From sequence record PQ464590.1: a DNA stretch of 64,000 bases; one strand, 5' to 3'. Numbering within the stretch: position 1 is the stretch's first letter; each line of letters starts with the position of its first letter. Below are positions 1 through 64,000 of the stretch, piece after piece. The notes beneath the pieces were generated by a model that saw nothing but the letters and a program-made list of their open reading frames with translations, ran no database searches and was not told where the DNA came from. A program made the position numbers and the translations under genes.

Positions 1-613
1 CCACATGCGGAGAACGATAGTAATCGTACACGCGAGGGTAGTCTGGAATCGTCTTCTGGTACTCTGCATCATACGATTCACTGAACTTCTTCTCTGCGAA
101 CAATGAATACTCATCAGCGAACAGATAGTTCATGTACTCATGTTCCGCACTAGCTGGTTCACCAATCTGTACTGCTGTCCAACGGGGTGGAGTTTTAGTA
201 CCCTGACGGTTCACACGCTCAATCTCGTTCTCACCCACCGTACTCTTCACAATCCAGTCAACTTCGTACGCATAATCAAAGTCCTTATACGTAGTACATG
301 ACTTTGTTCTTTTACCTTTAGAATCAGTACTGTAAGTACAGTGTTCACGTAGTGTGTAGTGTTTACACGAAGAACTTTGTGTACACCATTCAGTGTGCTT
401 GTACTTCTCAGTTACTTCACCGTTCAGAATTTCCACATCTGACAACTTACTGTACAGTACTGCGTATGTGATTCCCAGTGCGATACAACATGCAACCAGC
501 ATAATAGCAGTGTGAATGAAAACTTCCTTCATACTGATGGAACGGTCATAACGCCACTTCATGTACATCACTACAAGTAAAGCAGGGATTGCCAGTATTG
601 CGAAATTCAACAT
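1..613 (-). CDS. Phage membrane protein (two N-terminal TM helices, Cys-rich extracytoplasmic domain); 3' end runs off the window
   Basis: Not in the ORF track because it has no stop in the window. Manual translation from ATG at 613 gives MLNFAILAIPALLVVMYMKW...PPRWTAVQIGEPASAEHEYMNYLF...YPRVYDYY with no stop; AGGA SD upstream. Confidence 0.75.
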   Translation of the reverse strand, partial: MLNFAILAIPALLVVMYMKWRYDRSISMKEVFIHTAIMLVACCIALGITYAVLYSKLSDVEILNGEVTEKYKHTEWCTQSSSCKHYTLREHCTYSTDSKGKRTKSCTTYKDFDYAYEVDWIVKSTVGENEIERVNRQGTKTPPRWTAVQIGEPASAEHEYMNYLFADEYSLFAEKKFSESYDAEYQKTIPDYPRVYDYYRSPHV

Positions 614-644
614 TTTCGTTTTCCTTTAATTACGGGGTACACGC

Positions 645-673
645 ATAATACCCCGTTCTAACCAAGCTGTCAA
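645..673 (-). promoter_or_regulatory. Canonical sigma70-type (early) promoter TTGACA-17-TATTAT
   Basis: Plus strand ataata 645-650 and tgtcaa 668-673; 17-bp spacer; directly upstream of the 613 start. Confidence 0.7.
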
Positions 674-1360
674 TTACTTTTGATCAAGAATTTTTAGACA
701 GTATGAAATCTGTAATGCTTCACGTGCTGCATCATAAAGCGGGTGATGCAATTCAAGCACTCCTACCGTACCGTTCATATTGCTTACAAACGCTCCTAGA
801 ACACGCTGTACGATGTCGTCCATCTCTGCACGCTGTTCTTCATTCAAACGGTTCTTGAGCGTCCTGGCGTTTTGAGGGGACGAATAATGCCATAGATCTG
901 CATTACCATACAGTACTCTTGAGTTCTCTTGAAGAATAGAGCAATCGAAGTGGCAACCATTACCATACACTTCAGTACTGATAGAATCATCAACCCCGAA
1001 TTCATTACCGTATACGAATTGTTGAATTACATGCGGGGTGTAATGAACATAAGGATAGATGTATGAAACATTAGTATGAATTGCAGGTTTAGTTAGTGTG
1101 AATGACTTGATCATTTCAGCATGTGCACCTGGAAAATCTTTAGCACACATGTTGTGCCAAAAGTCCATAGTACTAGCACCAACACGCAAGCCCACGTCAA
1201 GCTGATCCTGTACTGGTTGTTGAATGTACAGGTATTCTAGATGGTCTGTATCAGGGGCATCAGGAATTGCAACGAATGCGAAATTAGGTACAACAACGGC
1301 ATAACCTGAATTCTCTGGATTTCCTAGTGATTCAATATCTAGGGCTGTCTTTCTACTCAT
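674..1360 (-). CDS. DEDD-superfamily 3'-5' exonuclease (DUF5051/Rv2179c-like)
   Basis: Motifs LDIESLG, GNGCHFDCSIL, HHPLYDA match DEDDh Exo I/II/III spacing. Confidence 0.6.
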   Translation of the reverse strand: MSRKTALDIESLGNPENSGYAVVVPNFAFVAIPDAPDTDHLEYLYIQQPVQDQLDVGLRVGASTMDFWHNMCAKDFPGAHAEMIKSFTLTKPAIHTNVSYIYPYVHYTPHVIQQFVYGNEFGVDDSISTEVYGNGCHFDCSILQENSRVLYGNADLWHYSSPQNARTLKNRLNEEQRAEMDDIVQRVLGAFVSNMNGTVGVLELHHPLYDAAREALQISYCLKILDQK

Positions 1361-1374
1361 ATATACTCCAATGT

Positions 1375-1402
1375 AAAAAAGGTACTCCGAAGAGTACCTT
1401 TT
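1375..1402 (-). terminator. Rho-independent terminator (possibly bidirectional) after telA
   Basis: aaaaaa-ggtactc-cgaa-gagtacc-tttt. Confidence 0.75.
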
Positions 1403-1417
1403 GTTTAGTTATGTATC

Positions 1418-2563
1418 TTACTTACGAGCATCTTCGCTGATGCTACGCAGGGTGTCACGCAGTTCGATACGCATCTGGGCCATTTCACGCTTAGCTGCTT
1501 CACGTTCTGCTTCACCTGCTTTCTGTACTGCGATGGTATCTTTGATACCCTGAATCGTAGTTTTCTGTACTTCACGTAGTGTTTTGATATCTACTACTCC
1601 ACGTTGTGCAGACTTAGCTGCTGTTACCATGTTAGTACTGGTCTGTTTCGCACTTTCTAGGAACAGACGGTTCGTTTCATCGTCCATCATCTCACCCAGT
1701 TCGTTATCACGACGCTGGCGGTCAGTAATCAGACCTTGTGCAATCTTAGATTTCCACGCTGGAATCACGATTGTTTTCAGAGATTCGAACTTGTCAATGG
1801 TGTTGATGTTCACACCACGCATTGCCATGATTTGTGGTGCGTTCAACTGGCACAGGTTGATAAGGCGGTTCACTTTATCTTCCTGCTTAGACAGTGCTTC
1901 ACAAATCATTTTCTGATGATCCAGAACGTGCATTTCTGTTTCTGGATTTTCTAGCAGGTCTTTCAGTTTAGCGTCTTCAACTTCACGCACTTCCTGAATG
2001 TTCTCTACTACACCTTCCAGTTCTTTCAGGTACACTACGTTCGCATCGTACGTGTCTTTCAGCCATTCAGCTTCACCACGCATACGTGCTACGCCAGTTT
2101 CCAGTGTACCCATCACTTCCTGAATCTGCTCATGGCTATTGGTCAACTGGTCAGATACACGGTGTTTCACATCACTGAACAGGTTCTTGAACTTGGCAAG
2201 CAGACCAGTCTGTTCACCGTTCAGAGAGTTGATATCCACTTTACGGGTCAGAGTCAGAATAGTACTGACAGATTTACCGAATTCGGAGTTGTCGTTCGCC
2301 ACGTTCACCTGACGCAGAATGTCATCTGACAGCTTACCGATACCAGTACCTACATCAGTACCGAGAGTGTTGATGTTCTCGATGGTCAGTGCCAGAGTGC
2401 CGCCTTTTGAATCTTTCAGTACTGCGGTACTTGGAAGATTTTTTGCGTCTTGTTCGAAAGAACCCGCATCAAAAGTCTGACCTTTTTTCTCGGCAGTTTT
2501 CTTAGCACGAGTTTTGGTGGTAGTAGCGGCTTTAGCTTTAGGGTTGATTTCTTTCTCGGACAT
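1418..2563 (-). CDS. telA: TelA / toxic anion resistance family protein
   Basis: 381-aa coiled-coil protein with TelA-type motifs (IPAWKSKIA, TNRLFLESA, GVVDIKTLRE, LLAKFKNLF). Confidence 0.8.
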   Translation of the reverse strand: MSEKEINPKAKAATTTKTRAKKTAEKKGQTFDAGSFEQDAKNLPSTAVLKDSKGGTLALTIENINTLGTDVGTGIGKLSDDILRQVNVANDNSEFGKSVSTILTLTRKVDINSLNGEQTGLLAKFKNLFSDVKHRVSDQLTNSHEQIQEVMGTLETGVARMRGEAEWLKDTYDANVVYLKELEGVVENIQEVREVEDAKLKDLLENPETEMHVLDHQKMICEALSKQEDKVNRLINLCQLNAPQIMAMRGVNINTIDKFESLKTIVIPAWKSKIAQGLITDRQRRDNELGEMMDDETNRLFLESAKQTSTNMVTAAKSAQRGVVDIKTLREVQKTTIQGIKDTIAVQKAGEAEREAAKREMAQMRIELRDTLRSISEDARK

Positions 2564-2615
2564 GTTTTGTTCCTTTTAGTGGTTTTAAAGAAGTTATCTC
2601 GTTTGGTATGGGAGT

Positions 2616-2644
2616 ATTATAGGTTACTACATACTCCCTGTCAA
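2616..2644 (-). promoter_or_regulatory. Canonical sigma70 promoter TTGACA-17-TATAAT upstream of telA
   Basis: attata 2616-2621, tgtcaa 2639-2644; perfect consensus. Confidence 0.8.
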
Positions 2645-2665
2645 TATCTTTTTTGAATCTTTTTT

Positions 2666-3835
2666 TTATTCTTCAGTACTGGTATCGTCTGAACCTTTTG
2701 CAGCATCTTTATCAGATGCACCGTACGCCAAGATGCGAATTGTACGTTCAGTATCAGCATCGATACTTTGACCAACTTGTGATTGCAGACGGTCAACAAC
2801 CAGTGGGATCAGAATCGTTTGAACTTCATTCATACGGTTGAAGTCTACCATAAACTGCTGACGGGTTGCAACTAAAGATGACTGCATAATTTCAGTAGTA
2901 ATAGCAACCTTCTGTAAACGCTGCTCTCCGAGTTCCCATTCGAACTTGTCTTCAACGTTTGCAATCTGATAGCCACAGCCAACAGTACCGTTTACGATGT
3001 TTTCCTGCAAAGATGCAATATCTTTGTTGATGTCGTCAAACATCAGTTTGATACCTTCGAAGCGAGTATGGTCGAATTGAACAGCACTTTGTAACGCTGA
3101 CAGTACTTTGTTCAGATCCGCTTCTTTTACAACTAAATCTGTTTTGCCACCGAAGATCTTCTGCATGAAGGTTGGTTTCAGTGGGAATAACTCTTCCATA
3201 GTGATACGCAGCTTGTCAAAGACAGTATGCAGATATTCACTATTAGCCTTGATTGCACCCGCTAGCTGAATCTTCTTCTCGGAGATTCCCTGTGACTGAA
3301 TAGCCAACTCACGGTTACAAACATCGTAGTTCTCGATCCAATCAAGTGCCAGTACTGGATCACATGCGATACCTTCTGGAGTCGAAGCGTATTGCTGAAT
3401 CAGAGAAACACGAACATCGTTCGGATCAACTGGAACACGCTCTTTCTTCACTACTGGAATGTTCAGTACTTCAACTGATGCCGCTTGTTTGATTTCAGTC
3501 TTACCTTCTTTCCAGTCTTTGTATTCTTTCTGCAATGCTGGCATAGGAAGATCTTTTACCCGCAGAGATTTGTCGAACATGATTTCGTCCAACATCAGTG
3601 CCTGAATACGCAGCTTAGTTGTGTCAAAATAGATTTCGTTCAAATCCAGCTTACGTACATCGAATACTGGATTACCCAGTGAGTCATATGTACGGTCAAC
3701 TACAATAGTGTAGCAGTACTTACGATTAGCAGATGATTTGTATTCTTTCAAGAGAGCATTACGAACGTATTCGTAATCGAACTCTTTAATTTCGATTTCC
3801 TTGCCATTCTCTTTAAAGAAATATTTGCCTTTCAT
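2666..3835 (-). CDS. TelA-like partner protein (helical/coiled coil)
   Basis: Directly upstream of telA; LFPLKPTFMQKIFGG resembles the TelA N-terminal segment; C-terminus is heptad-rich. Confidence 0.45.
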   Translation of the reverse strand: MKGKYFFKENGKEIEIKEFDYEYVRNALLKEYKSSANRKYCYTIVVDRTYDSLGNPVFDVRKLDLNEIYFDTTKLRIQALMLDEIMFDKSLRVKDLPMPALQKEYKDWKEGKTEIKQAASVEVLNIPVVKKERVPVDPNDVRVSLIQQYASTPEGIACDPVLALDWIENYDVCNRELAIQSQGISEKKIQLAGAIKANSEYLHTVFDKLRITMEELFPLKPTFMQKIFGGKTDLVVKEADLNKVLSALQSAVQFDHTRFEGIKLMFDDINKDIASLQENIVNGTVGCGYQIANVEDKFEWELGEQRLQKVAITTEIMQSSLVATRQQFMVDFNRMNEVQTILIPLVVDRLQSQVGQSIDADTERTIRILAYGASDKDAAKGSDDTSTEE

Positions 3836-3855
3836 AGTTTGACTCCTGTGTGATT

Positions 3856-3879
3856 AAAAAGGGAGATAATATATCTCCC
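3856..3879 (-). terminator. Rho-independent terminator
   Basis: aaaaa-gggagat...atctccc hairpin with a minus-strand T tract. Confidence 0.65.
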
Positions 3880-3892
3880 CTTGATGTGACAC

Positions 3893-3921
3893 ATAATATC
3901 TTACGGTGTCAGTACTGTCAA
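3893..3921 (-). promoter_or_regulatory. Canonical sigma70 promoter TTGACA-17-TATTAT
   Basis: ataata 3893-3898, tgtcaa 3916-3921. Confidence 0.65.
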
Positions 3922-3922
3922 C

Positions 3923-4447
3923 TTATTTTGTTGAATGCTGAACAACTTTTTTCACGAGCGGAAGAAGGTCATCAATTTCTTTGTTGAAGTTGTCTGCGGC
4001 ACGCTGTTCAGCGGTACGCTTGTCCAGTTCCTCCTCCGCCTCTTCTGCTGCCAGGTGACGACGTTTCTGACGTGCACGGTACTTCACTTCTTCAACTTTT
4101 TTCCATTCTAGGAAATTGTCGTCTTCGATTGCTTCAGCGTGTGCTTCACCGATAATTTCTGCCATCTGTTTAGCTGCTACTGCGATGTCGAATTTGCTAG
4201 CACGACCGTGAATGATGGTAGTTGTGTGAATTTCTCCTTCTTGTGGTAGCTCACCGTTTTGTGGAGTTACTACCGCGAATAACAGGTCAAAAGTTGGAAC
4301 TTCGTGGGTTGCTACTGTACGGATGTCGCCTTTGAAGGTTTCGGTTTCATAGATGATGATGCCAGCATCTTCAGAATCTTCACCATAAGAGGTAACGTTG
4401 TTTGCAGTGAAAGAATGACCAGTTACGTAGAAGAATTGAATTTTCAT
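3923..4447 (-). CDS. Hypothetical protein
   Basis: 174-aa ORF with AGGA SD and its own promoter. Confidence 0.7.
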   Translation of the reverse strand: MKIQFFYVTGHSFTANNVTSYGEDSEDAGIIIYETETFKGDIRTVATHEVPTFDLLFAVVTPQNGELPQEGEIHTTTIIHGRASKFDIAVAAKQMAEIIGEAHAEAIEDDNFLEWKKVEEVKYRARQKRRHLAAEEAEEELDKRTAEQRAADNFNKEIDDLLPLVKKVVQHSTK

Positions 4448-4494
4448 ATTTTATTTCCTTTTCAGTATATCGATAGTTGTCGTTACTGGGGTGC

Positions 4495-4522
4495 ATTATA
4501 CAGTACGGATACCTTTTGTCAA
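4495..4522 (-). promoter_or_regulatory. sigma70 promoter TTGACA-16-TATAAT
   Basis: attata 4495-4500, tgtcaa 4517-4522. Confidence 0.6.
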
Positions 4523-4552
4523 CCCCTAAAAGAAAAGAGGACGCAAATATTT

Positions 4553-5350
4553 TTACGCCCTCTTGATATTCCACTCAAATGTACTGACAGGCTCAAATCT
4601 CAAAGGTAGATAAGGCAAGTCGTACATTGTTCCATTCCTGAATCTCACGATGTAGGAATTTTGTAGTACTACTATAGCTTTGTTAAGAGCCATTGCAGCA
4701 CGTTCTTTCCAGAAGTTCTTATAAGGTTCAGGTGCTCCCAAGTATTCTAACTTGAACATTCCCAGTGCAGCTTGAATCAAACGTTGTGGTGGCTCAACAC
4801 GTCCTGGTTCTGAAAGTATAGCACCGTTCTGAAATGCTGTCCATCCAGGTTCGCCTGGCAGAGAACAGAATAAATCGAACGATTTCATACTTTGGCAGTA
4901 TTTTGAATCTTTTATCTGGTTGTGTATGACAGCTTCCTTCACTGTTTTATGCAAAGAGAACTTCATATGATGTACATCATTACGAAATAGTTTTTCCAGT
5001 TCAGAGTACGTTGTAGGTACGAGTAATTCTGGCATGTACTCACCGAAAACTTCTAGACAGAAAATATCCCACAATCCTGAAGTGAATTTTACCTCTAAAT
5101 CGTAGTACTCGTCGATGAAGTACTTACCCCTCAATTTCTTCTCATTGATGAAGACCTTTCGGGCTAAGTACGTCTTGAGGATCATTTCTGTACCAACATC
5201 ACGCCGATTGATGTCGTCATAGTTTTTACCGATTCTGTTTATCTCGTACGTTCTAAGAAACATACGTTTGCTTAGACCGACACGACCTGGACTTTGGAAT
5301 TCGTTCTTAGTACGTTCATGTAGTGCAATCAAACTATTGAGCACTCTCAT
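4553..5350 (-). CDS. Hypothetical protein
   Basis: 265-aa ORF tightly packed after the upstream gene. Confidence 0.7.
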   Translation of the reverse strand: MRVLNSLIALHERTKNEFQSPGRVGLSKRMFLRTYEINRIGKNYDDINRRDVGTEMILKTYLARKVFINEKKLRGKYFIDEYYDLEVKFTSGLWDIFCLEVFGEYMPELLVPTTYSELEKLFRNDVHHMKFSLHKTVKEAVIHNQIKDSKYCQSMKSFDLFCSLPGEPGWTAFQNGAILSEPGRVEPPQRLIQAALGMFKLEYLGAPEPYKNFWKERAAMALNKAIVVLQNSYIVRFRNGTMYDLPYLPLRFEPVSTFEWNIKRA

Positions 5351-5352
5351 GT

Positions 5353-6027
5353 TTAGCGTAGTACGAAGTACTTCCCGTTGTTAGACACAATGTACTGTGA
5401 GCCAGATTTCAGTACTGTGTACCCTTCACCAAGGATAGAGCTAAGACGAGTATCGTCCAGTTCGTATCCGTCTTTCAATGCTTCAACTACGTACGATTCA
5501 GATACTATAGCACTTCCACGAGAGTAATGCAAGTCTCCGTACGCAGTATTGAGTTTTATTGTTTCTGACAGTACTTCAGTTCCTACACAAGCACGGTCAA
5601 AGAACTCTGAAAGTTCTTCAGGCTTAGTGAGATCAATTTTAGTACTGATAACATCGAAATCAACATCGATTGGATCGTTCACGCCGTACAACTGGATTTT
5701 CCAGCCTGGGTTCGGACAAAGGTTCTCAATCGTTTTGAGTAGTGTTACTAATTTACGTGGGAATTCCCCAGTACGTTCGAATTCCGCAAAAACAATATAT
5801 CGACCATCAACGTTCGGAGTCTCACTCGCTTCAGTATCAATAGCACCTAAAGGTGACTTCTCAATAAACGAACTCAAGTCATAAGCAGCATCATAATTGT
5901 CACATACTTGGAATGCAACTACAATATTACCTTCACCAATTTTAGGAGTATATTCGTCTACGCTGATAATTTCATACACGAGGTCTTTGAGAATATCAGG
6001 ACGTAATGCACGCTCATCTAATTTCAT
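5353..6027 (-). CDS. Hypothetical protein (late operon)
   Basis: 224-aa ORF; start overlaps the upstream stop (TAATG). Confidence 0.7.
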   Translation of the reverse strand: MKLDERALRPDILKDLVYEIISVDEYTPKIGEGNIVVAFQVCDNYDAAYDLSSFIEKSPLGAIDTEASETPNVDGRYIVFAEFERTGEFPRKLVTLLKTIENLCPNPGWKIQLYGVNDPIDVDFDVISTKIDLTKPEELSEFFDRACVGTEVLSETIKLNTAYGDLHYSRGSAIVSESYVVEALKDGYELDDTRLSSILGEGYTVLKSGSQYIVSNNGKYFVLR

Positions 6028-6596
6028 TAGAAACCTCCTTGCTGCATATCATCGTTGCCGAATTGTGCATCCATTTGTTCTACATCTTGTTCATTGTCCA
6101 TATCCATTTCTGGAGCAGCAGAGAACTCTTCTTCATCATTACTGTTGAAGTCTGATGACATCAGTTTATATTCATCAAAACTCTCTGGGTTTACAATACG
6201 ACGAGGAATTTGGAATTTGTATAGAATGATTGGTTTACGTTCATCAGTTGGTATTCTAAAACCTGCACCTTGACCAGCAACGGTTTCCATATCTTCTAAA
6301 CTGCGTGGGTGTGTAACTGGACCAACTTCCCAATCAGGTTTTACAAATACTTTAGTACCTTGCTTTTCGAACATTAGTGTTGCGATAGGATCTGGGAAAG
6401 TATCATGGTCGAATTTGAAAGTAACTTCAACCCAGTACTTACTTACGATTGGGCCTTCTACAAGCTCACCGTCGATCCAATTCTCATACGCGTACAAATC
6501 CATATCATCAAAATACTTCTCGACACCCAATAGAATATCGAGAAGACCATCTTGATCATATAATGTCTGTACTGGAGAAGAATTAGTATTATCCAT
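6027..6596 (-). CDS. Hypothetical protein (late promoter, acidic tail)
   Basis: 189-aa ORF; TAAATA at 6630-6635 upstream. Confidence 0.7.
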   Translation of the reverse strand: MDNTNSSPVQTLYDQDGLLDILLGVEKYFDDMDLYAYENWIDGELVEGPIVSKYWVEVTFKFDHDTFPDPIATLMFEKQGTKVFVKPDWEVGPVTHPRSLEDMETVAGQGAGFRIPTDERKPIILYKFQIPRRIVNPESFDEYKLMSSDFNSNDEEEFSAAPEMDMDNEQDVEQMDAQFGNDDMQQGGF

Positions 6597-6652
6597 TATA
6601 AAATCCTTTTATAGTAATCTTTCTTATCTTATTTACTATAGAAAAATGGATA

Positions 6653-7267
6653 CTATTTGTTTAGCTTATATGACATCGTTCTTTGTAGTTGATACCAGTT
6701 CGGAACATATATGAAGTCATTATCTGCATTTTCAAAGCGAACATTATGTGACGCTTTGAGCATGATTCCAGGAATACCAATAGCCTGTGCTGCATTTATG
6801 TTGTCAATGTGGTCATCAACTAAAAACTGTACATCATAACGTTGTTTCAACTTGTACAGTACTGCTTTCTTAGATTCATACATTTCAACAATATGTATTT
6901 CATCAAATAAGCCTGGGTATACATTTTCTAAGTTCACACGGCGTAGTACATCACCGTGACCACCAGTACCACTCTTAGTTACTGCTGCCCATTTTACATC
7001 AGGGTAGTTTTTCTGTAGTAAACGCATGTATTCTACAGCATCTGGATCAAGAGGTTTCAGTAAACCAAATTCATAAGAACGCTCATTGAAGTGCTTCATA
7101 ATTTCTTGTACTTCTGTTTGAGTACGACCTAACCATTCAGTCAAGTCATATGAAGTTGGTTCACCTACTGGGTGGATATCGTAGTGTTTTTTGACGAACT
7201 CACGAAGACCACCAATGTGGTCTAACATCACTTCATCTACATCACACAATGCGATTCGTTGTTTCAT
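6653..7267 (-). CDS. HAD-superfamily 5'(3')-deoxyribonucleotidase-like phosphatase
   Basis: N-terminal CDVDEVM (DxD motif) and C-terminal FLVDDHIDN. Confidence 0.75.
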   Translation of the reverse strand: MKQRIALCDVDEVMLDHIGGLREFVKKHYDIHPVGEPTSYDLTEWLGRTQTEVQEIMKHFNERSYEFGLLKPLDPDAVEYMRLLQKNYPDVKWAAVTKSGTGGHGDVLRRVNLENVYPGLFDEIHIVEMYESKKAVLYKLKQRYDVQFLVDDHIDNINAAQAIGIPGIMLKASHNVRFENADNDFIYVPNWYQLQRTMSYKLNK

Positions 7268-8220
7268 TACATTTCACCTGCACAAATTAGGTCAATTTCG
7301 CATAGTAATGCGGATAGGTTCATTTCACGATCAGATACTGAAGCTTGTTTCACTACAGCATCACGGATTTTTACCTTGATTTTCATCACTGCAATATCAT
7401 CAGTCGTGAACATATCTACATTCCTATACAGGAATGAGAAGAATCCGTCAATTTCATCTTCAGGAATATTCTGCACAATCTCTTCACGCATTTGACGAAT
7501 ATTCCCAGCTTTTAGAGCATCAACGATACTGTCGCGGTACGATGCAGTACCATCAATTGATTCTTCTACTGGTACTAACTTTTTACCAACTACAGAACAC
7601 TGTAGTAGGTTCAGTGTTTTACGAAAATCTGGGAAAGTCTTCTTGATGTACTTTTGCACCAAGTCAATACTTTCTTGAGTTTCTAATTCTACACCTTCTG
7701 CTAGTAGTACTGTAATCACTCGTTCCATGAACTGTTCCATATCGTGTTTTTCAATCATAATTGACTGTACACGAGATAGGATTGGTCTTAGGATTTTGTG
7801 TGGTTCATTGGAGGTTAGAATGAACCGAGCATTCTCGTGATAATCCTCCATGATACGCTTTAGGGAACCTTGTGCTTTTTGGTGCATCTGTTCCATTTCT
7901 TCTAGAACGAAGATACGGTACTTACCGAAACACGCCAACCGAGCAGCGGAGTCGATTTTATCACGTACTGCGTCCATACCTTCATCGGACATGTTCAGTA
8001 CTGTTACGTCACCTTCATCAATGAAACCATTGGCAATAAGACCTTTGATTAGTACTTGAAGAGCAGAAGTCTTACCAGTACCAGCAGGGCCAAAGAAACC
8101 AATATGAGGGATTTCACCAGTGCTAATCCACTCTTCCATTTTCTGACGGAACGCATCATTTTTGAACACATAGTCTTCGAGGGTATTAGGGCGATATTTT
8201 TCTGTCCATAGAGTAGTCAT
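7267..8220 (-). CDS. 44: Clamp loader AAA+ subunit (T4 gp44/RFC-like)
   Basis: LWTEKYRP, Walker A GPAGTGKT, LNMSDE, Walker B-like VLEEME, ILSRVQ arginine-finger region. Confidence 0.92.
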   Translation of the reverse strand: MTTLWTEKYRPNTLEDYVFKNDAFRQKMEEWISTGEIPHIGFFGPAGTGKTSALQVLIKGLIANGFIDEGDVTVLNMSDEGMDAVRDKIDSAARLACFGKYRIFVLEEMEQMHQKAQGSLKRIMEDYHENARFILTSNEPHKILRPILSRVQSIMIEKHDMEQFMERVITVLLAEGVELETQESIDLVQKYIKKTFPDFRKTLNLLQCSVVGKKLVPVEESIDGTASYRDSIVDALKAGNIRQMREEIVQNIPEDEIDGFFSFLYRNVDMFTTDDIAVMKIKVKIRDAVVKQASVSDREMNLSALLCEIDLICAGEM

Positions 8221-8244
8221 TTTATTTCCTTATTCCTTATTGCC

Positions 8245-8520
8245 TTAGTATTTCCATTTGGAGTTGTCGTACATCATTGCTGTAAATAAATCTTCTGTCA
8301 TTTCGAGTTGGTTAAACAAGTACTCGAATGTATTTGATTTGTTAGGGAGATCCATACCCGCAGCTTGTGCATTAGCTGCTTGTACTAGAAGTCGTTTAAA
8401 CACATCATGTGGGACTTCGTATACTAGTTTTCGATTTCGAGGTGTTTCGAAATAGAACTTACCTTTCTTAGCCTGTAATTGAACATCACTGAAGCTAAAC
8501 GTACCGTCATCATTTACCAT
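8245..8520 (-). CDS. Hypothetical protein
   Basis: 91-aa ORF collinear with neighbours. Confidence 0.6.
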   Translation of the reverse strand: MVNDDGTFSFSDVQLQAKKGKFYFETPRNRKLVYEVPHDVFKRLLVQAANAQAAGMDLPNKSNTFEYLFNQLEMTEDLFTAMMYDNSKWKY

Positions 8521-8531
8521 ATAGTACCTAC

Positions 8532-8559
8532 AAAAAAGAAGCCCAGAATCATCTGGGCT
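8532..8559 (-). terminator. Rho-independent terminator after groES
   Basis: aaaaaa..agcccaga-atca-tctgggct. Confidence 0.7.
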
Positions 8560-8565
8560 GTTAAA

Positions 8566-8886
8566 TTAGTATCCAAGGAATAAATCTTTTGGACGTTCAG
8601 GAGAAGCGATTAGTACATTAGTAGGATAATCAACTAAGTTTAGTTGAACACCATCAATCTCGATAGTCCTTGACCAACGACCATGTACAATAAGAATCCA
8701 CTCACCTTCTTTTAGATCAGTAACATCTTCACCGACCGAATACACTTGACCCCAACGAGCATGGACACCACGCACCGTACCGTCATCATCACGAAGTACG
8801 ATACCTGCTTCAGAAACTTGCTCACCACGATCCAAATTTTTCACTAGTACTTTACCTGCACTAGCTTGTATAACTTTTGACTCCAT
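8566..8886 (-). CDS. groES: GroES-like co-chaperonin (copy 1)
   Basis: KVLVK...SEAGIVL...GQVYSVG..V..LKEGEWIL matches the Cpn10 pattern. Confidence 0.8.
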   Translation of the reverse strand: MESKVIQASAGKVLVKNLDRGEQVSEAGIVLRDDDGTVRGVHARWGQVYSVGEDVTDLKEGEWILIVHGRWSRTIEIDGVQLNLVDYPTNVLIASPERPKDLFLGY

Positions 8887-8892
8887 CCGAAA

Positions 8893-9252
8893 TTACTCCT
8901 GATCTGGATTTTTCACTTTAGCACGTTTTACTGGAGCAGCTTTTACTGGCTCTTCTTGTACTTCTTGTACTTCTTCGTCTTGTTTCTCGAACATACTATC
9001 ATCAAAGCCATCATCCACTGCTGGAGCAGCACTGTGAGATGTGTGTTCAGGAACAATATCAGGAATTTGCATTTCGCGTTCACGTTCTGCTAGTAGTTCT
9101 TCACGAGTCTTGATGATTGTACCACCACGACCAATTTTGTCACCACGGGCATTCATGCTTGCATTACCGAGGGCAGTCTTGTGCTCGTTCTGGAACTTTA
9201 GCATTTCCATGTCGATTGCTGTGCCACGATAAGATACGTGTTTTTTACTCAT
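8893..9252 (-). CDS. Hypothetical protein
   Basis: 119-aa ORF with AGGA SD and upstream promoter. Confidence 0.7.
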   Translation of the reverse strand: MSKKHVSYRGTAIDMEMLKFQNEHKTALGNASMNARGDKIGRGGTIIKTREELLAEREREMQIPDIVPEHTSHSAAPAVDDGFDDSMFEKQDEEVQEVQEEPVKAAPVKRAKVKNPDQE

Positions 9253-9281
9253 AATAAATCCTTTTATCTGTGTGATACCTT

Positions 9282-9311
9282 ATTATATCACATTTTTTGC
9301 TACCATTTCAA
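9282..9311 (-). promoter_or_regulatory. Phage-class promoter (TTGAAA-18-TATAAT, with ATGTGA before the -10)
   Basis: tattatatcacattt at 9281; weakest upstream box of the class. Confidence 0.6.
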
Positions 9312-9833
9312 AAATTCGTTCACATCGAGAGAATATTTTATTGAATCCACCATATGAAGCCCAATCAGATACAAACAATAGCTCGCAACTGAACTTCCAC
9401 GGCCTAAGCCCCAAAAGATTTCATGCTCTTCCATATAGTCAACCAACCAAATCATACAACGTAATAGTTTAGTCATGTTGTAGCTCTCGTATAAACTCAA
9501 CTCGTACAGTACTCGTTCTCTTTCTACATCAGTACTGCACTTTTGAAGAAAGAATTCCTGTAAGTTGATTTTGTCATATACTGAATCATATCTCCACAAC
9601 TCATGATTCTGACTGTGGTCTATTTTATAATCCAGCATACGATGAGATAACCCGAATTTCTTACAGTTCTCATTGAACTTCAATCGTTCAGGTTCATCCA
9701 TTTCCATCAACTGCATGTACTGTATATCTTGACCGCAGTTCATGGCATATACTACTGCATTCAGGTTACAGTGAACATCACCATCCTGACTTATAAATCT
9801 GTTTCCTTGTACTTTCATTAGGTCGTTTCTCAT
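9300..9833 (-). CDS. DnaE (Pol III alpha, C-family)-like N-terminal fragment
   Basis: RVLYEL...WLVDYM...WGLGRGSSVASYCLYLIGLHMVDSIKYSLDVNEFLK aligns by eye with DnaE RL..EL...[35 protein letters not shown]. Confidence 0.8.
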   Translation of the reverse strand: MRNDLMKVQGNRFISQDGDVHCNLNAVVYAMNCGQDIQYMQLMEMDEPERLKFNENCKKFGLSHRMLDYKIDHSQNHELWRYDSVYDKINLQEFFLQKCSTDVERERVLYELSLYESYNMTKLLRCMIWLVDYMEEHEIFWGLGRGSSVASYCLYLIGLHMVDSIKYSLDVNEFLKW

Positions 9834-10086
9834 CCTCTTCAGATGCTAAGTAAGAATCAGAATCGAACACACAACTATCTTCATCACGCCAGCTTTCAGC
9901 TTCTTTACGTGAATGACGTAAGTAGTTCTCTTCCTCACAGGCTTGAAGTACCATATACATACCGTTAAGAATGTCAGATCCCATACCCGCAGCACGGGCA
10001 TGTGAAATCTTAGTACTCATATCTAAAATCTTTTGATTTAATTCCTTATCACTCATACCCTCTGGGCTGAAAAATGGATTGAACAT
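9778..10086 (-). CDS. Hypothetical protein
   Basis: 102-aa ORF with GGAGG SD. Confidence 0.65.
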   Translation of the reverse strand: MFNPFFSPEGMSDKELNQKILDMSTKISHARAAGMGSDILNGMYMVLQACEEENYLRHSRKEAESWRDEDSCVFDSDSYLASEEDEKRPNESTRKQIYKSGW

Positions 10087-10087
10087 G

Positions 10088-12484: not shown

Positions 12485-12504
12485 AATGATTAAAAGCTAT
12501 GTGG

Positions 12505-12512
12505 TATTTATA
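12505..12512 (-). promoter_or_regulatory. T4-type late promoter TATAAATA
   Basis: Plus strand tatttata; exact T4 late consensus, just downstream of a terminator. Confidence 0.7.
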
Positions 12513-12517
12513 AGAAC

Positions 12518-12540
12518 AAAGGACGCTATATGCGTCCTTT
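12518..12540 (-). terminator. Terminator after topoisomerase genes
   Basis: aaaggacgc-tatat-gcgtccttt. Confidence 0.7.
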
Positions 12541-12544
12541 AATA

Positions 12545-13951: not shown

Positions 13952-14003
13952 TCCATTGCCTCTTTGATATTATGGGGAACTTCATGTCCCCCCTTGTACT
14001 AAT

Positions 14004-15965: not shown

Positions 15966-15999
15966 TATAGTTTCCTTTCTATTGTCTCTTAGCATAGTT

Positions 16000-16029
16000 A
16001 TTATATCACATTTTGTTTCTTTGTCTCAA
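16000..16029 (-). promoter_or_regulatory. Phage-class promoter TTGAGA-18-TATAAT
   Basis: attata 16000-16005, tctcaa 16024-16029. Confidence 0.75.
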
Positions 16030-16066
16030 AAAAATATCGGAAACGCGTTAACGCCTCCGATATTAT

Positions 16067-17658
<1,592 letters not shown>

Positions 17659-17665
17659 AGATTAC

Positions 17666-18202: not shown

Positions 18203-18212
18203 AGAATCCCTC

Positions 18213-18719: not shown

Positions 18720-18772
18720 ATAAGTTATTCAACTCCAGTGGGTTTTAGTAGGTCAACATCGTGTTGAGATGT

Positions 18773-18801
18773 AATATACGTCATTGCGAAGCTCATGTCA
18801 A
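18773..18801 (-). promoter_or_regulatory. sigma70 promoter TTGACA-17-TATATT upstream of infC
   Basis: aatata 18773-18778, tgtcaa 18796-18801. Confidence 0.65.
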
Positions 18802-19004
18802 CCCTCGTGATGTTTTTTAATTGCATCACAAATTAGTTGCACCTGGATTAGCTGATTCTTAGCAAGTTCAGCTTGTGTCCGTGTGCGAGCGTTTTCCGCT
18901 TCGTGAATCATAATCTCAAGATCGTAAATCACACGATCAAATGCATCTTTGTTATCTAAGATGCGATTGTAATATGGTTTGTTATCCATGTCAAGTGACT
19001 CCAT
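18798..19004 (-). CDS. Hypothetical protein
   Basis: 68-aa helical ORF in an operon. Confidence 0.55.
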   Translation of the reverse strand: MESLDMDNKPYYNRILDNKDAFDRVIYDLEIMIHEAENARTRTQAELAKNQLIQVQLICDAIKKHHEG

Positions 19005-19012
19005 GTAAAAAA

Positions 19013-21142: not shown

Positions 21143-21594
21143 TGCGACTCCTTCGCTTCTGTTGCGGCCTCTCGTGCTAGATCATCTGCTATTTCGTTGT
21201 AATAGTCTTTTGCGTGACCCTTTACCCATTGAAACTTACAATCATCACCCAGCACATCCAGTACTGTCCAGAGGTCCAAATTCTTTTTACATCCTTTCCA
21301 TTTAGTCTTCTTCCAACCGTGACGCCAGGTATCCATCCCCTGAACAACGTAGTTCGAATCAGTAATGACTGTAATGTTATTATTATAACCAAATGTTTCT
21401 TTGACGTACGCAATACCACTCATGGCTGCTAGCATTTCCATTCGGTTATTAGTGGTGTACTTCTCACCAAAAGATAAACGGGCAACTTCTTGGTTATCTT
21501 TCAATACTACAATACCAACGCCTCCAGGCCCTGGATTGCCTAAACATGATCCATCAGTGTATATCGTGAACATATCAAATCCATTTAGTTTCAA
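21139..21594 (-). CDS. rnhA: Ribonuclease HI
   Basis: IYTDGSCLGNPGPGG, TTNNRMEM, TDSNYV, WVKGHA, NEIADDLA. Confidence 0.95.
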   Translation of the reverse strand: MKLNGFDMFTIYTDGSCLGNPGPGGVGIVVLKDNQEVARLSFGEKYTTNNRMEMLAAMSGIAYVKETFGYNNNITVITDSNYVVQGMDTWRHGWKKTKWKGCKKNLDLWTVLDVLGDDCKFQWVKGHAKDYYNEIADDLAREAATEAKESQ

Positions 21595-22084
21595 TTATAG
21601 TGTTATTCCAGTACTCAACGATTGTTCCATCTTCGAGTACTTTTGCACTTTCCATTTCGAGGTTCACATAAGGGTTAGCGTGAATGTCAAAGTGTGCATC
21701 ACATTCATATGAACCTTGAATCTTACTTAGTACTACTGTATCAATGAATGGTAGTGCGAGTTGATAAATTCGAGATCCACCCATCACTACACAATCAGGA
21801 TTATTATGAATGATTTGTGGTAGTGAATCTTCAGACATGAACAGTACTGATGGTTCAGAATCTACTGCATCACGTTCATTGTAATCACGAGATAGTAGTA
21901 CTATATTGGTACGACCAGGTAGTGGTTTACGTGGCAAAGATTTCCAAGTCTTGAAACCCATCACGACAACCTTCCCCATAGTTTCTTCTTTGAAATGTTT
22001 GAAGTCCGCAGAACTGTGCCACGGGATGGTATTCTGGTATCCGATTCCATTATTCGTATCGGTACATAATATCATTTTAGACAT
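21575..22084 (-). CDS. frd: Dihydrofolate reductase
   Basis: GIGYQNTIPWH..ADFKHFK..T.GK.VVMG.KTW.SLP.KPLPGR.N, MGG..IY. Confidence 0.95.
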   Translation of the reverse strand: MSKMILCTDTNNGIGYQNTIPWHSSADFKHFKEETMGKVVVMGFKTWKSLPRKPLPGRTNIVLLSRDYNERDAVDSEPSVLFMSEDSLPQIIHNNPDCVVMGGSRIYQLALPFIDTVVLSKIQGSYECDAHFDIHANPYVNLEMESAKVLEDGTIVEYWNNTIIETKWI

Positions 22085-28988: not shown

Positions 28989-29546
28989 TTATTTAGTTTT
29001 TTCTTGCTGTGCTTTCACCTCGGCAATACGAGCTTCAATCATATCAGATACGAGAGTACTGTCAACTGCGTTTAGGATTGCTTCTGGTACAGCGGTTTTT
29101 AGATGTTTGATGTACGGCTGGAAAGATTTTGCTTCTTTACCTTGTAGTGCTTCTTTGATGATAGTGATGTCTTCACCTTTAGATTCAACACGAACTACAT
29201 CTTCGGTTGCGAATTCAGTTTCTACGGCGGCAGCTTCTTCATCTTGTGCTTTTGTGATTTCTTCTGGTTGAGCTTCGAACTCTGGTACTTCTTTATACTC
29301 TTCAACCAAAACCTTTGGTACTTCTGCTTCTTCACGCATCATTAGGTCAGCGATTTGTTCTGCGATTACATCAGCAGTTTGACCGCCACGAGTGCGGAGA
29401 GCTTTTACACCCTCAATTAGAGTTACGCTAATTGGAAGTGCTTCAACTTCTTCATCTGTTAGTGCTAGTAGTTGTTCTAGTTCGTAACCTTTCGATTGTA
29501 GTGCTTTGATTGTGAATAAATCTAGTTTCATTGTTCTAATTCCCAT
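28989..29546 (-). CDS. Hypothetical acidic protein
   Basis: ORF 28989-29561; start uncertain (29546 or 29531). Confidence 0.65.
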   Translation of the reverse strand: MGIRTMKLDLFTIKALQSKGYELEQLLALTDEEVEALPISVTLIEGVKALRTRGGQTADVIAEQIADLMMREEAEVPKVLVEEYKEVPEFEAQPEEITKAQDEEAAAVETEFATEDVVRVESKGEDITIIKEALQGKEAKSFQPYIKHLKTAVPEAILNAVDSTLVSDMIEARIAEVKAQQEKTK

Positions 29547-30249
29547 GTTGTATATCTCCACGCATTGTATAGTATTGTTCTACTTTAGCAATCCAAGAAT
29601 TACATGCATCTTTGAAGTCTTGTCCTTCAACTACGAATTCCTGGTATTGTAAATTTTGAGGATCTTTGCGAACGCAAATAAAAATAACGCCACGGTCTAT
29701 TGTGGTTCCGTGTTGCCAGTTGTGAGCTAATGCATACGCTGCTAACTGTAGACGGTAGTTTTCAATTTGTTTCCACGTTTTTTCTTTGCGTGAATTCTTG
29801 TAATCCATTATTGACGGGATGCCATTGTGTATCCCAACTAAATCTGTAGTACCAGCCCATAGCCCTTCGTAGTATAAAGGAACTTCTTGACCCCATACTT
29901 CGTTTATCTTAGGCCATGCTTCTCGCTGAACCACGTCTGCCATTCTACGAGCTAGCACTCGTACTGGCATTCCACCTTCATGGTCTGGTTTCCCAACTAA
30001 ACGGTTCTCCAAGTTTTCGTGCATGAAAGTACCAATTGTTGTTGCTTCAAGACATATTTCATCAGCCTTAGCATCACCAACAAAAGCACGCCATTGTTTC
30101 AATCCTTCATTGTCATCCGTCGCTGAAAGAATTGTGGTAACTGATGGTAGGTTCCCCGATGGAGTAGAATAAAGGCGACCTTCTGGGCCGCCTTCGATTC
30201 TATTGTAACCTACATAAGTATACCGTTCTACGATAGGGGGTGTGTACAT
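29536..30249 (-). CDS. PD-(D/E)XK exonuclease (RecB/Cas4/lambda-exo-like fold)
   Basis: PSVTTIL, GTFMHENLE, EVPLY, GTTDLVG, IMDYKNS, QLAAYA. Confidence 0.85.
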   Translation of the reverse strand: MYTPPIVERYTYVGYNRIEGGPEGRLYSTPSGNLPSVTTILSATDDNEGLKQWRAFVGDAKADEICLEATTIGTFMHENLENRLVGKPDHEGGMPVRVLARRMADVVQREAWPKINEVWGQEVPLYYEGLWAGTTDLVGIHNGIPSIMDYKNSRKEKTWKQIENYRLQLAAYALAHNWQHGTTIDRGVIFICVRKDPQNLQYQEFVVEGQDFKDACNSWIAKVEQYYTMRGDIQHGN

Positions 30250-48306: not shown

Positions 48307-52258
<3,952 letters not shown>

Positions 52259-60387: not shown

Positions 60388-60392
60388 TTATT

Positions 60393-62151: not shown

Positions 62152-62457
62152 TTAGATAAGTCCGTTATCTAAGTCATCAGCTACTGCGTCAATCATATTA
62201 GCTGCTAATTTCTTACCCATCTTGAACCATTCTGTTCCAGGGCTTCGAGTAGCATTCATTTGTTTTAGACGTTTATGAACTTCCTTTTCGGCTGCTTTAG
62301 CGTCATCAAATTGTACCTCATGATACACTTCATAGTCTCTGAATGGAGATCCTGTTTGATACGTACTAAGGCGAGTTTTCATTTCAGATTTAGACGTGAA
62401 ACCGATCTTAACCCATTCAGGCCAAGCAGCATTTGTGATTACGTAACAGATTTGCAT
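62152..62457 (-). CDS. T5orf172/MUG113 GIY-YIG-like protein
   Basis: CYVI...WVKIGFT...RL..YQTGSP...E...H..L...EWF. Confidence 0.8.
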   Translation of the reverse strand: MQICYVITNAAWPEWVKIGFTSKSEMKTRLSTYQTGSPFRDYEVYHEVQFDDAKAAEKEVHKRLKQMNATRSPGTEWFKMGKKLAANMIDAVADDLDNGLI

Positions 62458-62487
62458 AGTACCTCCATATTATCATGGAAGTATTTA

Positions 62488-62889
62488 TCAGCCAATTTTG
62501 AAGTTGATTCCGAGCTTAGATAGTTTGTCGAAACCGCTAACTGGACGTAGTTCAGGTGGGATTTCTGGACGACCAGTATGTTGAGTAGCATAAACATCAT
62601 TCAGTACTGGTGCGTCAGCATGTTTTGAATTCAAAATATCTTTATATTTTTGGACATATTCTATGTATGTCATTTCAGTACTGTCACAGTTCATGATATC
62701 TTTAATGTAATCGGTTTTCCTGTAACGATATGCCTCTACTGATTGAAATAGAAGTTCCATATCTTCAGAGTACGCGACTAGACTGTAGTCTTCAATTAGT
62801 GTTTCGAAGTTACTGAACGCTGATTGAAGGAATTTATTGAAGTGCGGGAACGTGTATACCGTCACTGTCATACCATTTTTAATTTCCAT
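62488..62889 (-). CDS. Hypothetical protein (late promoter)
   Basis: 133 aa; AGGAG SD; TAAATA at 62907-62912. Confidence 0.65.
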   Translation of the reverse strand: MEIKNGMTVTVYTFPHFNKFLQSAFSNFETLIEDYSLVAYSEDMELLFQSVEAYRYRKTDYIKDIMNCDSTEMTYIEYVQKYKDILNSKHADAPVLNDVYATQHTGRPEIPPELRPVSGFDKLSKLGINFKIG

Positions 62890-62918
62890 ATTTTCTCCTT
62901 GTCCTGTATTTAATTATA

Positions 62919-62950
62919 ACAAAAGAAAAGGGACTCATCAAGAGTCCCTT
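62919..62950 (-). terminator. Terminator after the major capsid gene
   Basis: aaaagaaaagggactc-atcaa-gagtccctt. Confidence 0.75.
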
Positions 62951-62993
62951 AGTGTTTTTAATCAAATTATTAGAATCTAACTTACTTCTTCTA

Positions 62994-64000
62994 TTACATG
63001 AAGGTTACGTTGCGGATAGCAATTTTGCTGTAGTAGTCAGCAGCGTTACCTAGAGAGGAAGTACTGTCGGTCAACTGAACGTAGCCATAACGAGTTAGGA
63101 AGGTAGTTACTAGTTCACCAGTGTTCGGGTCCATTACAGTACCAGATGCCATTAGTGGGATGTACGGGCAGTAGAATACGCCAGCATCAGTTTCAGCATT
63201 ACCTTTGTAACCAATTAGTACGTCAGTACTGTCATCAGCATAGGTGTCAACATATACACGCATGGTGCTGTTTAGTACGCCTACAAACTTAACGTTAGTT
63301 GGTGCTTCGAACACACCTTCAGTGGTACGAGCAAAACTAGAAGTAGTTGCAGATTGTAGAATGGTTAGTGCAGTTGGGGAAACAACAGCCCAGTTAGCAG
63401 CACCACGTTTGGTACGACGAGCAACTTCGTTCGCTTGACGGTTGATTAGGGTTGCTAGAGCAGCGTGCTCATCACCAACGAAGGTTGCAACACCAGTAAC
63501 TTTAGCTTGGTCATAAGTAACCGCAGCAGCACCAGGTAGAGCACGTAGTTTGTGTAGTAGCTCTTGGTCGATTTCAGTAGTGATTTCTTGTGCGATTGCA
63601 GCCATTAGTTCTGCTTCAACGTCAATACCGTGTTGGGATTGTGCATCTTGTGCAGATTCAACAGTCCAACGAGCAGATAGACGACGGGATTTCGCTTCAA
63701 CCGTTTCACGTAGAATACGGATGTTTACGCGACGACCCATAGTACCTTCGAGTTGGGAAGTAGGTGCAGCACGTGGATTATCATTATCACCGTTAACATC
63801 ACCAGTATAAGACTTAGCGATTTTGTACGGGGATAGCATTTCTTCACCAGCTACAACGCCTGGTGCGTTATCAGCATATTGAACACGTAGAGTGTGGATT
63901 TGACCAACTGGGCCAGTCATAGGCTGAACACCAATGATTTCGTTAGCAATAACGGTTGGCATTACACGACGCATGATAGGTAGGATAACCTTGTTTAGAG
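62994..64000 (-). CDS. 23: Major capsid protein (gp23-like), 5' part outside the window
   Basis: GVQPMTGP.GQI..LR, ESAQD..SQHGID.E.EL, EITTEID, ANEVARRTKRG.AN, FYCPYIPL, TRYG; the frame stays open to the window end (LNKVILPIMRRV). Confidence 0.95.
   Translation of the reverse strand, partial: LNKVILPIMRRVMPTVIANEIIGVQPMTGPVGQIHTLRVQYADNAPGVVAGEEMLSPYKIAKSYTGDVNGDNDNPRAAPTSQLEGTMGRRVNIRILRETVEAKSRRLSARWTVESAQDAQSQHGIDVEAELMAAIAQEITTEIDQELLHKLRALPGAAAVTYDQAKVTGVATFVGDEHAALATLINRQANEVARRTKRGAANWAVVSPTALTILQSATTSSFARTTEGVFEAPTNVKFVGVLNSTMRVYVDTYADDSTDVLIGYKGNAETDAGVFYCPYIPLMASGTVMDPNTGELVTTFLTRYGYVQLTDSTSSLGNAADYYSKIAIRNVTFM

Follow-up and report, generated by a model that had tools for sequence, protein, structure and literature searches.

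The stretch of DNA analysed here, to which we refer as the window, is 64,000 nucleotides long and corresponds to bases 124001-188000 of sequence record PQ464590.1, the genome of Erwinia phage Hallingskeid. This phage is a jumbo myovirus with a genome of 366 kb, and among its relatives are EJP2, PBECO4/121Q, GAP32, CBB and RaK2. The window carries genes of replication and nucleotide metabolism as well as some structural genes, nearly all of them on the minus strand, and its 82 annotated coding sequences (CDSs) are the basis of the CDS-based counts given below for the window. Our subject is the palindrome AGTACT, which is about nine times more frequent in this DNA than expected and is accompanied by a complete absence of the tetramer GCGC. 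The features that concern us most are the following.

1..64000, no strand: AGTACT, 192 copies (3.0 per kb), 49 of them as CAGTACTG; annotated CDSs contain 191 of the 192
1..64000, no strand: GCGC absent, 0 copies against 69 ± 7 in dinucleotide-preserving shuffles
3910..3917, minus strand: sole intergenic copy of CAGTACTG in the window, overlapping the -35 box TTGACA and the spacer of a sigma70-like promoter located upstream of the CDS 2666-3835

Dinucleotide-preserving shuffles of the window give 21.8 ± 4.5 copies of AGTACT (maximum 33) and base composition predicts 20.3, which confirms the roughly ten-fold excess that a first-pass annotation of this DNA had proposed (192 copies against about 21). 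All 14 positions that it had listed between 1 and 4000 are exact copies of AGTACT, and the segment 56400-59900, for which it had estimated the same number, contains exactly 14. Among the words of the form NGTACN, AGTACT alone stands out, with 192 copies against 0-70 for the rest. The base that precedes it follows the order C > T > A with G being rare, and the base that follows it mirrors this preference. The octamer CAGTACTG is thus found 49 times, compared to 1.2 ± 1.3 expected copies, TAGTACTA is found 15 times and GAGTACTC does not occur.

The whole 366 kb genome contains 1,313 copies of AGTACT against 120 expected (about 3.6 per kb) and 412 copies of CAGTACTG against 4.66 expected, an approximately 89-fold excess. 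Over the 1,313 sites, position -1 is occupied by C (54%), T (21%), A (18%) or G (7%). A weak symmetric context extends over about 22 bp around the site and has the consensus TTnCAGTACTGnAA. Extensions of AGTACT to 7- to 10-mers are equally common on both strands, in a genome where 81% of the genes share one strand. A longer repeat family was considered and ruled out, as the sequence logo of the window is informative at ±1 only and all 1,313 sites are required to bring out the weak A/T flanks. A resemblance to half-sites of the LexA or TrpR type was dropped because the next-base frequencies show no extension.

Two nulls that respect the coding content were employed. The looser one shuffles synonymous codons inside each gene, whereas the strict one holds the amino acid sequence, the codon usage and every dinucleotide constant. 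For the CDSs of the window, the synonymous shuffle yields 47.9 ± 6.3 copies of AGTACT and the strict null yields 65.2 ± 6.8 copies, compared to 191 observed. The strict null is the one that the first-pass annotation had named as able to dissolve the enrichment, and the enrichment remained. Genome-wide, the strict null gives 381 ± 17 copies of AGTACT and 47 ± 6 copies of CAGTACTG against 1189 and 364 observed, respectively. Codon or amino acid need as the cause of the excess is therefore ruled out by both nulls, in agreement with the earlier argument from the use of all three codon phases: of the window sites, 92 encode Ser-Thr (AGT-ACT), 67 encode Val-Leu (xxA-GTA-CTx) and 32 are in the phase xAG-TAC-Txx.

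The influence appears to run in the opposite direction. Ser-Thr dipeptides number 135 against 80 expected and Val-Leu dipeptides 147 against 111, whereas the reversed pairs Thr-Ser (81) and Leu-Val (108) show no excess, and 92 of the 135 Ser-Thr pairs are written AGT-ACT, for which the expectation is 21. Since the excess concerns Ser-Thr and Val-Leu and not their reversed counterparts, the word shapes the proteins and not the reverse.

Codon alignments of the window genes with those of nine relatives at about 70% nucleotide identity show that 35-40% of the site positions are common to Hallingskeid and its relatives. The conservation of residues at the sites does not exceed the average (0.51 versus 0.53), and sites in orthologues often arise through amino acid replacements, that is non-synonymously. 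Where a conserved Ser-Thr pair is written AGT-ACT in Hallingskeid, the relative also uses AGT-ACT in 106 of 134 cases (79%), and where Hallingskeid does not use it, the relative still does in 19 of 29 (66%). Sites in phase 0 are identical in the relatives in 40% of the cases versus 17% for other hexamers, which reflects mostly a shared bias and not a positional memory. Single-mismatch differences between orthologues are scattered over all positions and base types and reveal no dominant substitution route. The similar use of AGT-ACT in the face of such a turnover of positions means that each lineage is continuously pushed towards the word; an ongoing pressure towards AGTACT thus acts on density, and not on position, in every lineage.

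Placement and spacing of the sites

AGTACT is densest at the left end of the genome, a region of small early genes with 57-76 sites per 10 kb, and has a density of 18-50 sites per 10 kb elsewhere. The early promoters of this region (PQ464590.1 about 800-20100, minus strand) fall in two near-identical families of sigma70 type, one with the sequence AGTACTTGCA...AGTACTGTATAAT and the other with the sequence AGTACTATTGACA...AGTACTGGCATAAT, often followed by ATTGAAACG. In these promoters, one AGTACT abuts the -35 box and another lies directly 5' of the -10 box, and the two copies are 20 or 22 bp apart. The element ATTGAAACG is similar to a -35-like element, TGAAACG, that has been described in CBB and GAP32. 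Only about 50 of the 1,313 copies are located in promoters, and AGTACT is absent from the RpoD-like promoters listed for CBB. Hence, the word is not primarily a promoter element, and its promoter use is lineage-specific. The CBB promoter table rules out a clade-wide promoter element as well.

The intergenic site of the window had been assigned to a promoter spacer by the first-pass annotation. This is correct, and the hexamer at 3911 additionally covers the last base of the TTGACA -35 box before it extends into the spacer, a position of the kind seen in the early promoters. Non-coding DNA is site-rich in the early region of Hallingskeid and in a prophage family described below, unlike the intergenic DNA of the window. 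Among the genes of the window, the extremes of site content and the gene that was used to gather relatives are as follows.

21575..22084, minus strand: dihydrofolate reductase gene with the top site density of the window (5 sites, 9.8 per kb)
49950..50708, minus strand: hypothetical gene adjoining the large terminase subunit gene (6 sites, 7.9 per kb)
29536..30249, minus strand: exonuclease gene of 714 nt, no site
48307..49950, minus strand: large terminase subunit (TerL) gene (1.8 sites per kb), which served to gather the relatives and to build the orthologue codon alignments

Sixteen genes of the window are free of sites versus a Poisson expectation of 16.9, and therefore no one-site-per-gene rule applies. 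We looked for a gradient of sites along genes and saw none. Protein constraint as a limit on density is ruled out by the absence of a correlation between site density and protein conservation (rho = -0.08). Two further regions have a site density above average, namely eight consecutive genes with the annotation regulator of chromosome condensation (RCC1-like) at PQ464590.1 23542-33003 (4.1 sites per kb) and a long run of hypothetical genes of about 180-210 amino acids at about 347700-358000 (5.6 sites per kb).

The spacing of the sites is mildly under-dispersed. The coefficient of variation (CV) of the gaps in the window is 0.81, whereas random placement gives 0.99 ± 0.07, and none of the twelve 30 kb blocks of the genome reaches a CV of 1 (0.78-0.96). 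Gaps shorter than 25-50 bp and gaps longer than 1.2 kb are both under-represented. Abundant hexamers, which were used as a control, have gap CVs of 1.1-1.6.

GCGC loss and a second lineage

The absence of GCGC extends to the whole 366 kb genome, where 556 copies are expected and the strict null gives 245 ± 12. GCGC is absent from every member of the clade and present in the outgroup, in T4, T5, T7 and lambda, and in our samples of host DNA. These samples are small: 50 kb of E. coli, which contain 0.06 AGTACT per kb (3 sites) and 6.8 GCGC per kb, and the DNA beside a Leclercia prophage. Furthermore, 22 of the 64 six-base palindromes are missing from the Hallingskeid genome, including GGATCC, GAGCTC, GTCGAC, CTGCAG, CAGCTG, CCATGG, AGGCCT and GGTACC, and the 63 palindromes other than AGTACT have a mean log2(observed/expected) of -2.6. 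The tetramers TTAA, CCGG and GGCC are likewise depleted. A GCGC-specific nuclease was found here in neither host nor phage.

The AGTACT excess is common to all RaK2/GAP32/121Q/CBB/EJP2-type jumbo phages examined. In 15 of 15 IMG/VR relatives with a TerL identity of at least 71%, AGTACT is the top palindrome with an excess of 5-8 fold, and EJP2 contains 164 copies against 16 expected. The relatives keep the 6-mer core and disfavour G at position -1, whereas the strong preference for C at this position is seen most clearly in Hallingskeid, EJP2 and RaK2. AGTACT is not enriched in the next group, at a TerL identity of 41-45%, nor in T4, T5, T7, lambda and the Escherichia phage DCP80. The distribution of the trait rests on scans that give at least the lineages named here. 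In the literature that we searched, the motif is not described for these phages, although such a report could still exist.

Viral contigs were scanned for closely spaced pairs of CAGTACTG. In addition to contigs of the jumbo clade, this gave a family of 16-35 kb contigs which, among the matches listed, show an AGTACT excess of 11-19 fold and no GCGC. Apart from a lysozyme domain, we found no genes common to this family and Hallingskeid (open reading frames (ORFs) of at least 40 amino acids, E < 1e-3). A complete copy is present as an approximately 35 kb prophage in the clinical Leclercia chromosome CP046445.1. It encodes a serine integrase, about nine early genes without assigned function, a terminase and portal of lambda type, an HK97-type capsid and a lambda-like tail. 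The family is one of temperate siphoviruses. Its sequence contains one insertion, which is described by its position in the extracted prophage locus.

11488-12708 of the extracted CP046445.1 prophage locus, no strand: ISL3-family transposase insertion between the early genes and the terminase, with 0 AGTACT and 6 GCGC

With this insertion sequence (IS) removed, the prophage contains 142 copies of AGTACT against 10.5 expected, 55 copies of CAGTACTG against 0.5, and no GCGC against 65. Its strict null yields 28 ± 4 copies of AGTACT compared to 103 observed. The sites occupy all codon phases, and the non-coding DNA is the richest in them. The host DNA beside the prophage has ordinary word usage, and so does the ISL3 insertion, which therefore constitutes a clean internal control. 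Divergent relatives of the prophage, at 35-40% protein identity, also bear the signature, and in the 284 kb of this family 14 of the 64 six-base palindromes are absent. In both lineages, the excess of AGTACT is coupled with a total loss of GCGC.

No nucleotide match to the prophage family was found among phage isolates or complete E. coli genomes. The early proteins of the prophage have no NCBIfam match, four that were tested have no PDB sequence match, and their PHROG hits are uninformative or differ from those of the Hallingskeid nucleases. By tail protein, the nearest isolate is DCP80 (PQ671644.1), whose J-like tail-tip protein is 31% identical to that of the Leclercia prophage. This member of the Tevenvirinae combines T4-type motA, ndd, rIIA and endonuclease VII genes with the J-like tail tip, and has neither the AGTACT nor the GCGC signature.

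The two lineages agree in the surroundings of the word. In the pooled loci of the prophage family the base at -1 is C in 59% and G in 7% of the cases, compared to 54% and 7% in Hallingskeid. The flank profiles correlate with r = 0.99 at position -1 and with r = 0.81 over positions -8 to -2, where the latter value was obtained from partly redundant prophage loci and without a control word for comparison and may therefore be inflated. The weaker preferences common to both lineages are an increase of T and a decrease of C at -4/-3, and an increase of A at -8/-7. The usage of the 69 palindromes that contain neither GTAC nor GCGC correlates at 0.75-0.81 between the lineages, compared to 0.4-0.5 for T7 and a correlation near 0 for T4 and for the outgroup.

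Two AGTACT clusters lie in non-coding DNA of the prophage locus. One of them, at 9632-9800, comprises five AGTACT in about 170 bp upstream of a 266-residue protein (PHROG 5172). The other, at 8080-8150, comprises three AGTACT downstream of a gene for 164 amino acids, and two of its copies are 22 bp apart, as in the Hallingskeid promoters. A scan of species-representative genomes gave mostly chance matches among those listed. Two arrays of another appearance were noticed: IMGVR_UViG_3300032300_000752 has four CAGTACTG pairs with a period of 54 bp at 3435-3631, and contig7 of Bacillaceae bacterium JMAK1 has 21 copies of CAGTACTG in 8 kb and normal GCGC. Both probably represent tandem repeats that have no relation to the phage signature.

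The AGTACT array and its possible reader

In kind, the signal is HIP1-like, and its viral setting is new. HIP1 (GCGATCGC) is an 8-bp palindrome of cyanobacteria that is 15- to 300-fold over-represented, a range that includes the approximately 89-fold excess of CAGTACTG. Like HIP1, the phage word has an octamer excess of one to two orders of magnitude, occurs within and between genes in all reading frames, is not driven by codons or peptides, is found lineage-wide and appears to be maintained against mutation, and in both cases its function is unexplained. The likeness drawn by the first-pass annotation was hence apt in scale and in genome-wide spread. The differences are that the word is another one and its carrier is a virus and not a cell, that no methylation of AGTACT was detected in the published nanopore data on Hallingskeid, that AGTACT is coupled to a complete loss of GCGC, and that it is found in two unrelated phage lineages and not in their hosts.

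Chi (GCTGGTGG) and the DNA uptake sequences (DUS/USS) are similarly short words that are enriched by selection on density and not on position and that mark a genome's own DNA. Unlike the palindromic AGTACT, they are asymmetric and orientation-dependent, and their readers are known (RecBCD and ComP-type receptors). With regard to the earlier suggestion of a Chi-like recombination or packaging signal, AGTACT is a perfectly strand-symmetric palindrome, unlike the oriented Chi, and the host Chi is enriched in its own right. In the coding part of Hallingskeid, Chi occurs 34 times on the coding strand against 11.8 ± 3 in the strict null, and its complement occurs 17 times against 3.8 ± 1.4, so that Chi is enriched 3-4 fold overall, which hints at an interplay with the host RecBCD. 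The T5 record annotates single-strand interruptions at the consensus Pu|GCGC, which means that a phage activity can target GCGC; however, T5 itself has 35 copies of GCGC in 50 kb of its sequence and no AGTACT excess.

We favour an explanation in which selection maintains AGTACT as an array of sites for a single, putative DNA reader that is symmetric (dimeric) and common to both lineages, and we place its probability at roughly 0.4. Selection would keep AGTACT, usually as CAGTACTG in Hallingskeid, dense on the double-stranded phage DNA as part of a three-part word grammar, in which AGTACT is hyper-abundant, GCGC is absent and most other 6-bp palindromes are purged. The sites would act as an array of weak binding sites which, at about 3.6 per kb versus about 0.06 per kb in the E. 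coli sample, would mark the DNA as that of the phage, and the bound reader would cover, protect or organise the phage chromosome. The symmetry of the word, its context of about 22 bp, its spacing and the absence of a conversion signature fit an array for a dimeric reader better than a mutational drive. The same extended motif in lineages without common genes argues for one common reader. Such a protein would more likely be supplied by the host, or be common to these infections, than be inherited vertically in the phages. A host protein or an infection-common factor is the simplest source, and an undetected small gene common to both lineages or a mimicry of one lineage by the other is possible. 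Of the earlier proposal of a DNA-organising protein such as the DsbA-like gene, the class of explanation has turned out to be the most plausible, whereas the gene itself could not be verified, and the ORFs adjoining the RNase H gene have no family match.

Several observations weigh against a common reader. No such protein was found among the phage or host candidates examined, and no Pfam match was obtained for the genes next to the phage sigma factor or for the small ORFs beside RNase H. A putative reader of host origin would find few sites in the host chromosome, as the 3 sites in 50 kb of E. coli indicate, a scarcity that one would not expect for a housekeeping protein. Only one site lies in the 2.7 kb of intergenic DNA of the window. 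The gaps in the prophage lineage show no clear under-dispersion (mean CV 0.95, and 1.01 for the complete prophage). The correlation of the outer flanks has to be read with the above reservation.

A more specific version of the common-reader explanation can be formulated. CAGTACTG and GCGC would be the positive and negative halves of a system that tells phage from host DNA, in which an infection-associated nuclease destroys GCGC-bearing DNA, such as that of the host with its approximately 7 sites per kb, and a protein of the Enterobacterales or specific to the infection reads the CAGTACTG array and thereby covers or organises the DNA that escapes destruction. The same pass-mark would then have been adopted by at least two unrelated phage lineages. 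The approximately 60-fold contrast in AGTACT with the host and the contrast in GCGC would suit such a discrimination. In this detailed form, the proposal is speculative, and we would not expect it to be correct. The temperate phage might, for example, imitate the word grammar of the jumbo phages and in this way survive their infections or take advantage of them.

The most serious competitor to a common reader, though itself doubtful, is that each lineage possesses its own phage-encoded one, perhaps a small DNA-binding protein whose divergence or shortness would hide it from BLASTP and which was moved horizontally or arose by convergence. The array would then serve the phage itself, for instance in the organisation of its chromosome, in the control of early promoters or in self-recognition. 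The two fixed places of AGTACT in the early promoters of Hallingskeid and the AGTACT clusters in the regulatory intergenic regions of the prophage are in agreement with it, as is the fact that most genes of both lineages lack an assigned function. However, the lysozyme domain is the only protein feature that the lineages were found to share, their PHROG families differ, promoter use is lineage-specific in view of the CBB promoters, and two proteins are unlikely to converge on the same 8-mer together with its weak outer flanks. A neutral drive, through biased repair or gene conversion tied to methylation as in Dcm/Vsr and in one proposal for HIP1, is improbable. The core of HIP1 is methylated, and Hallingskeid encodes two methyltransferases, neither of them in the window, where the first-pass annotation had rightly seen none: a phage-type Dam, and a C5 cytosine enzyme of 285 amino acids (PQ464590.1 104901-105758) with a short recognition region, which matches Dcm, HhaI and Dnmt3 in the catalytic core alone. 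A close orthologue of the C5 enzyme was found among the IMG/VR clade contigs in RaK2 only (61% identical, among the matches listed), and EJP2 also has an annotated cytosine methyltransferase. In the paper describing Hallingskeid, nanopore sequencing of native versus amplified DNA revealed modification only at GATC and CCWGG, so that methylation of the core by a conserved solitary methyltransferase, as in HIP1, was not observed in this phage; the authors of the RaK2 study mention CpG methylation (data not shown), but AGTACT contains no CpG. A tblastn search of the whole phage genome with the E. coli Vsr produced no homologue (best E-value 1.7). None of the one-mismatch neighbour words is depleted as a precursor would be (nine pairs at 0.82-1.37 of the null, with the deamination-product neighbours AGTATT/AATACT at 0.82). 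Together with the broad spectrum of substitutions between orthologues, these results leave the methyl-directed repair considered by the first-pass annotation unsupported, and a drive is not expected to produce under-dispersed spacing. As a separate observation, CCWGG is nearly absent from four contigs of the clade (0-1 copies versus 15-18 expected) and normal in the others, which suggests the presence or absence of a protecting cytosine methyltransferase.

It is quite improbable that the excess is a by-product of extreme restriction-site avoidance and of the codon usage resulting from it, with AGTACT being merely a tolerated palindrome. The purging of GCGC and of many 6-bp palindromes does resemble restriction-site avoidance, and AGT, ACT, GTA and CTA are preferred codons, but avoidance accounts for absences and not for a ten-fold excess. 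The strict null reaches a third of the observed count, thirteen other palindromes tolerated in both lineages are all within about two-fold of expectation, and T7 avoids palindromes equally and has AGTACT at 0.4 of expectation; the shifted dipeptide composition and the site-rich non-coding DNA of the prophage are also at odds with it. Still harder to defend is a function at the RNA level, where transcript copies of the self-complementary CAGUACUG would pair with one another or be bound by an RNA-binding factor. Nearly all phage DNA is transcribed, 191 of the 192 window sites lie within genes, and self-pairing would account for the palindromy. However, symmetric weak flanks out to 8 bases fit a dimer on duplex DNA better, copies occupy -35 and spacer positions of promoters, and the sites follow neither a bias along genes nor a one-site-per-gene rule. 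A very unlikely alternative is that the sites serve type II topoisomerases (host gyrase, topoisomerase IV or a T4-type phage enzyme) and are spaced to relieve supercoiling in heavily transcribed DNA. The repeated palindromic REP elements bind gyrase, the core of the phage site is symmetric with A/T-phased flanks, and its density peaks in the promoter-dense early region, but the gyrase motif as mapped in E. coli is 130 bp long, degenerate and indirectly read, and contains no sharp word of 6-8 bp. The least credible of these explanations is the titration or recruitment of the host nucleoid-occlusion protein SlmA. The E. coli SlmA site, GTGAGTACTCAC, has the identical AGTACT core and is read as a palindrome by a dimeric helix-turn-helix protein. 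SlmA occurs in the Enterobacterales, the host order of both lineages, and it is, to our knowledge, the only enterobacterial protein with an AGTACT-centred site. However, SlmA requires G1, T2 and a purine at position 3, whereas in the phage the base at -1 is a pyrimidine in 75% and G in 7% of the sites, and no preference for G-T exists at -3/-2. GT.AGTACT.AC fits only 4 of the 1,313 sites, and the full SlmA site fits none, so that the flanks exclude SlmA as the reader.

Highly iterated palindromes are a long-standing puzzle, and HIP1 has been without an explained function for decades. The phages described here have small genomes and short generations and grow on laboratory hosts (E. coli in the case of EJP2, PBECO4 and 121Q), and they come with natural controls in the form of the host flank, the IS insertion and the sister clades that lack the trait, which makes the question experimentally tractable. 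In restriction digests, their DNA is predicted to be rich in sites for ScaI and RsaI and to lack sites for HhaI, and the combination of AGTACT and GCGC is a simple and very specific marker for finding these lineages in metagenomes. In summary, the loss of GCGC and the occurrence of the identical extended motif in unrelated prophages suggest an undescribed trans-acting reader or defence-related activity in the infections of these phages.

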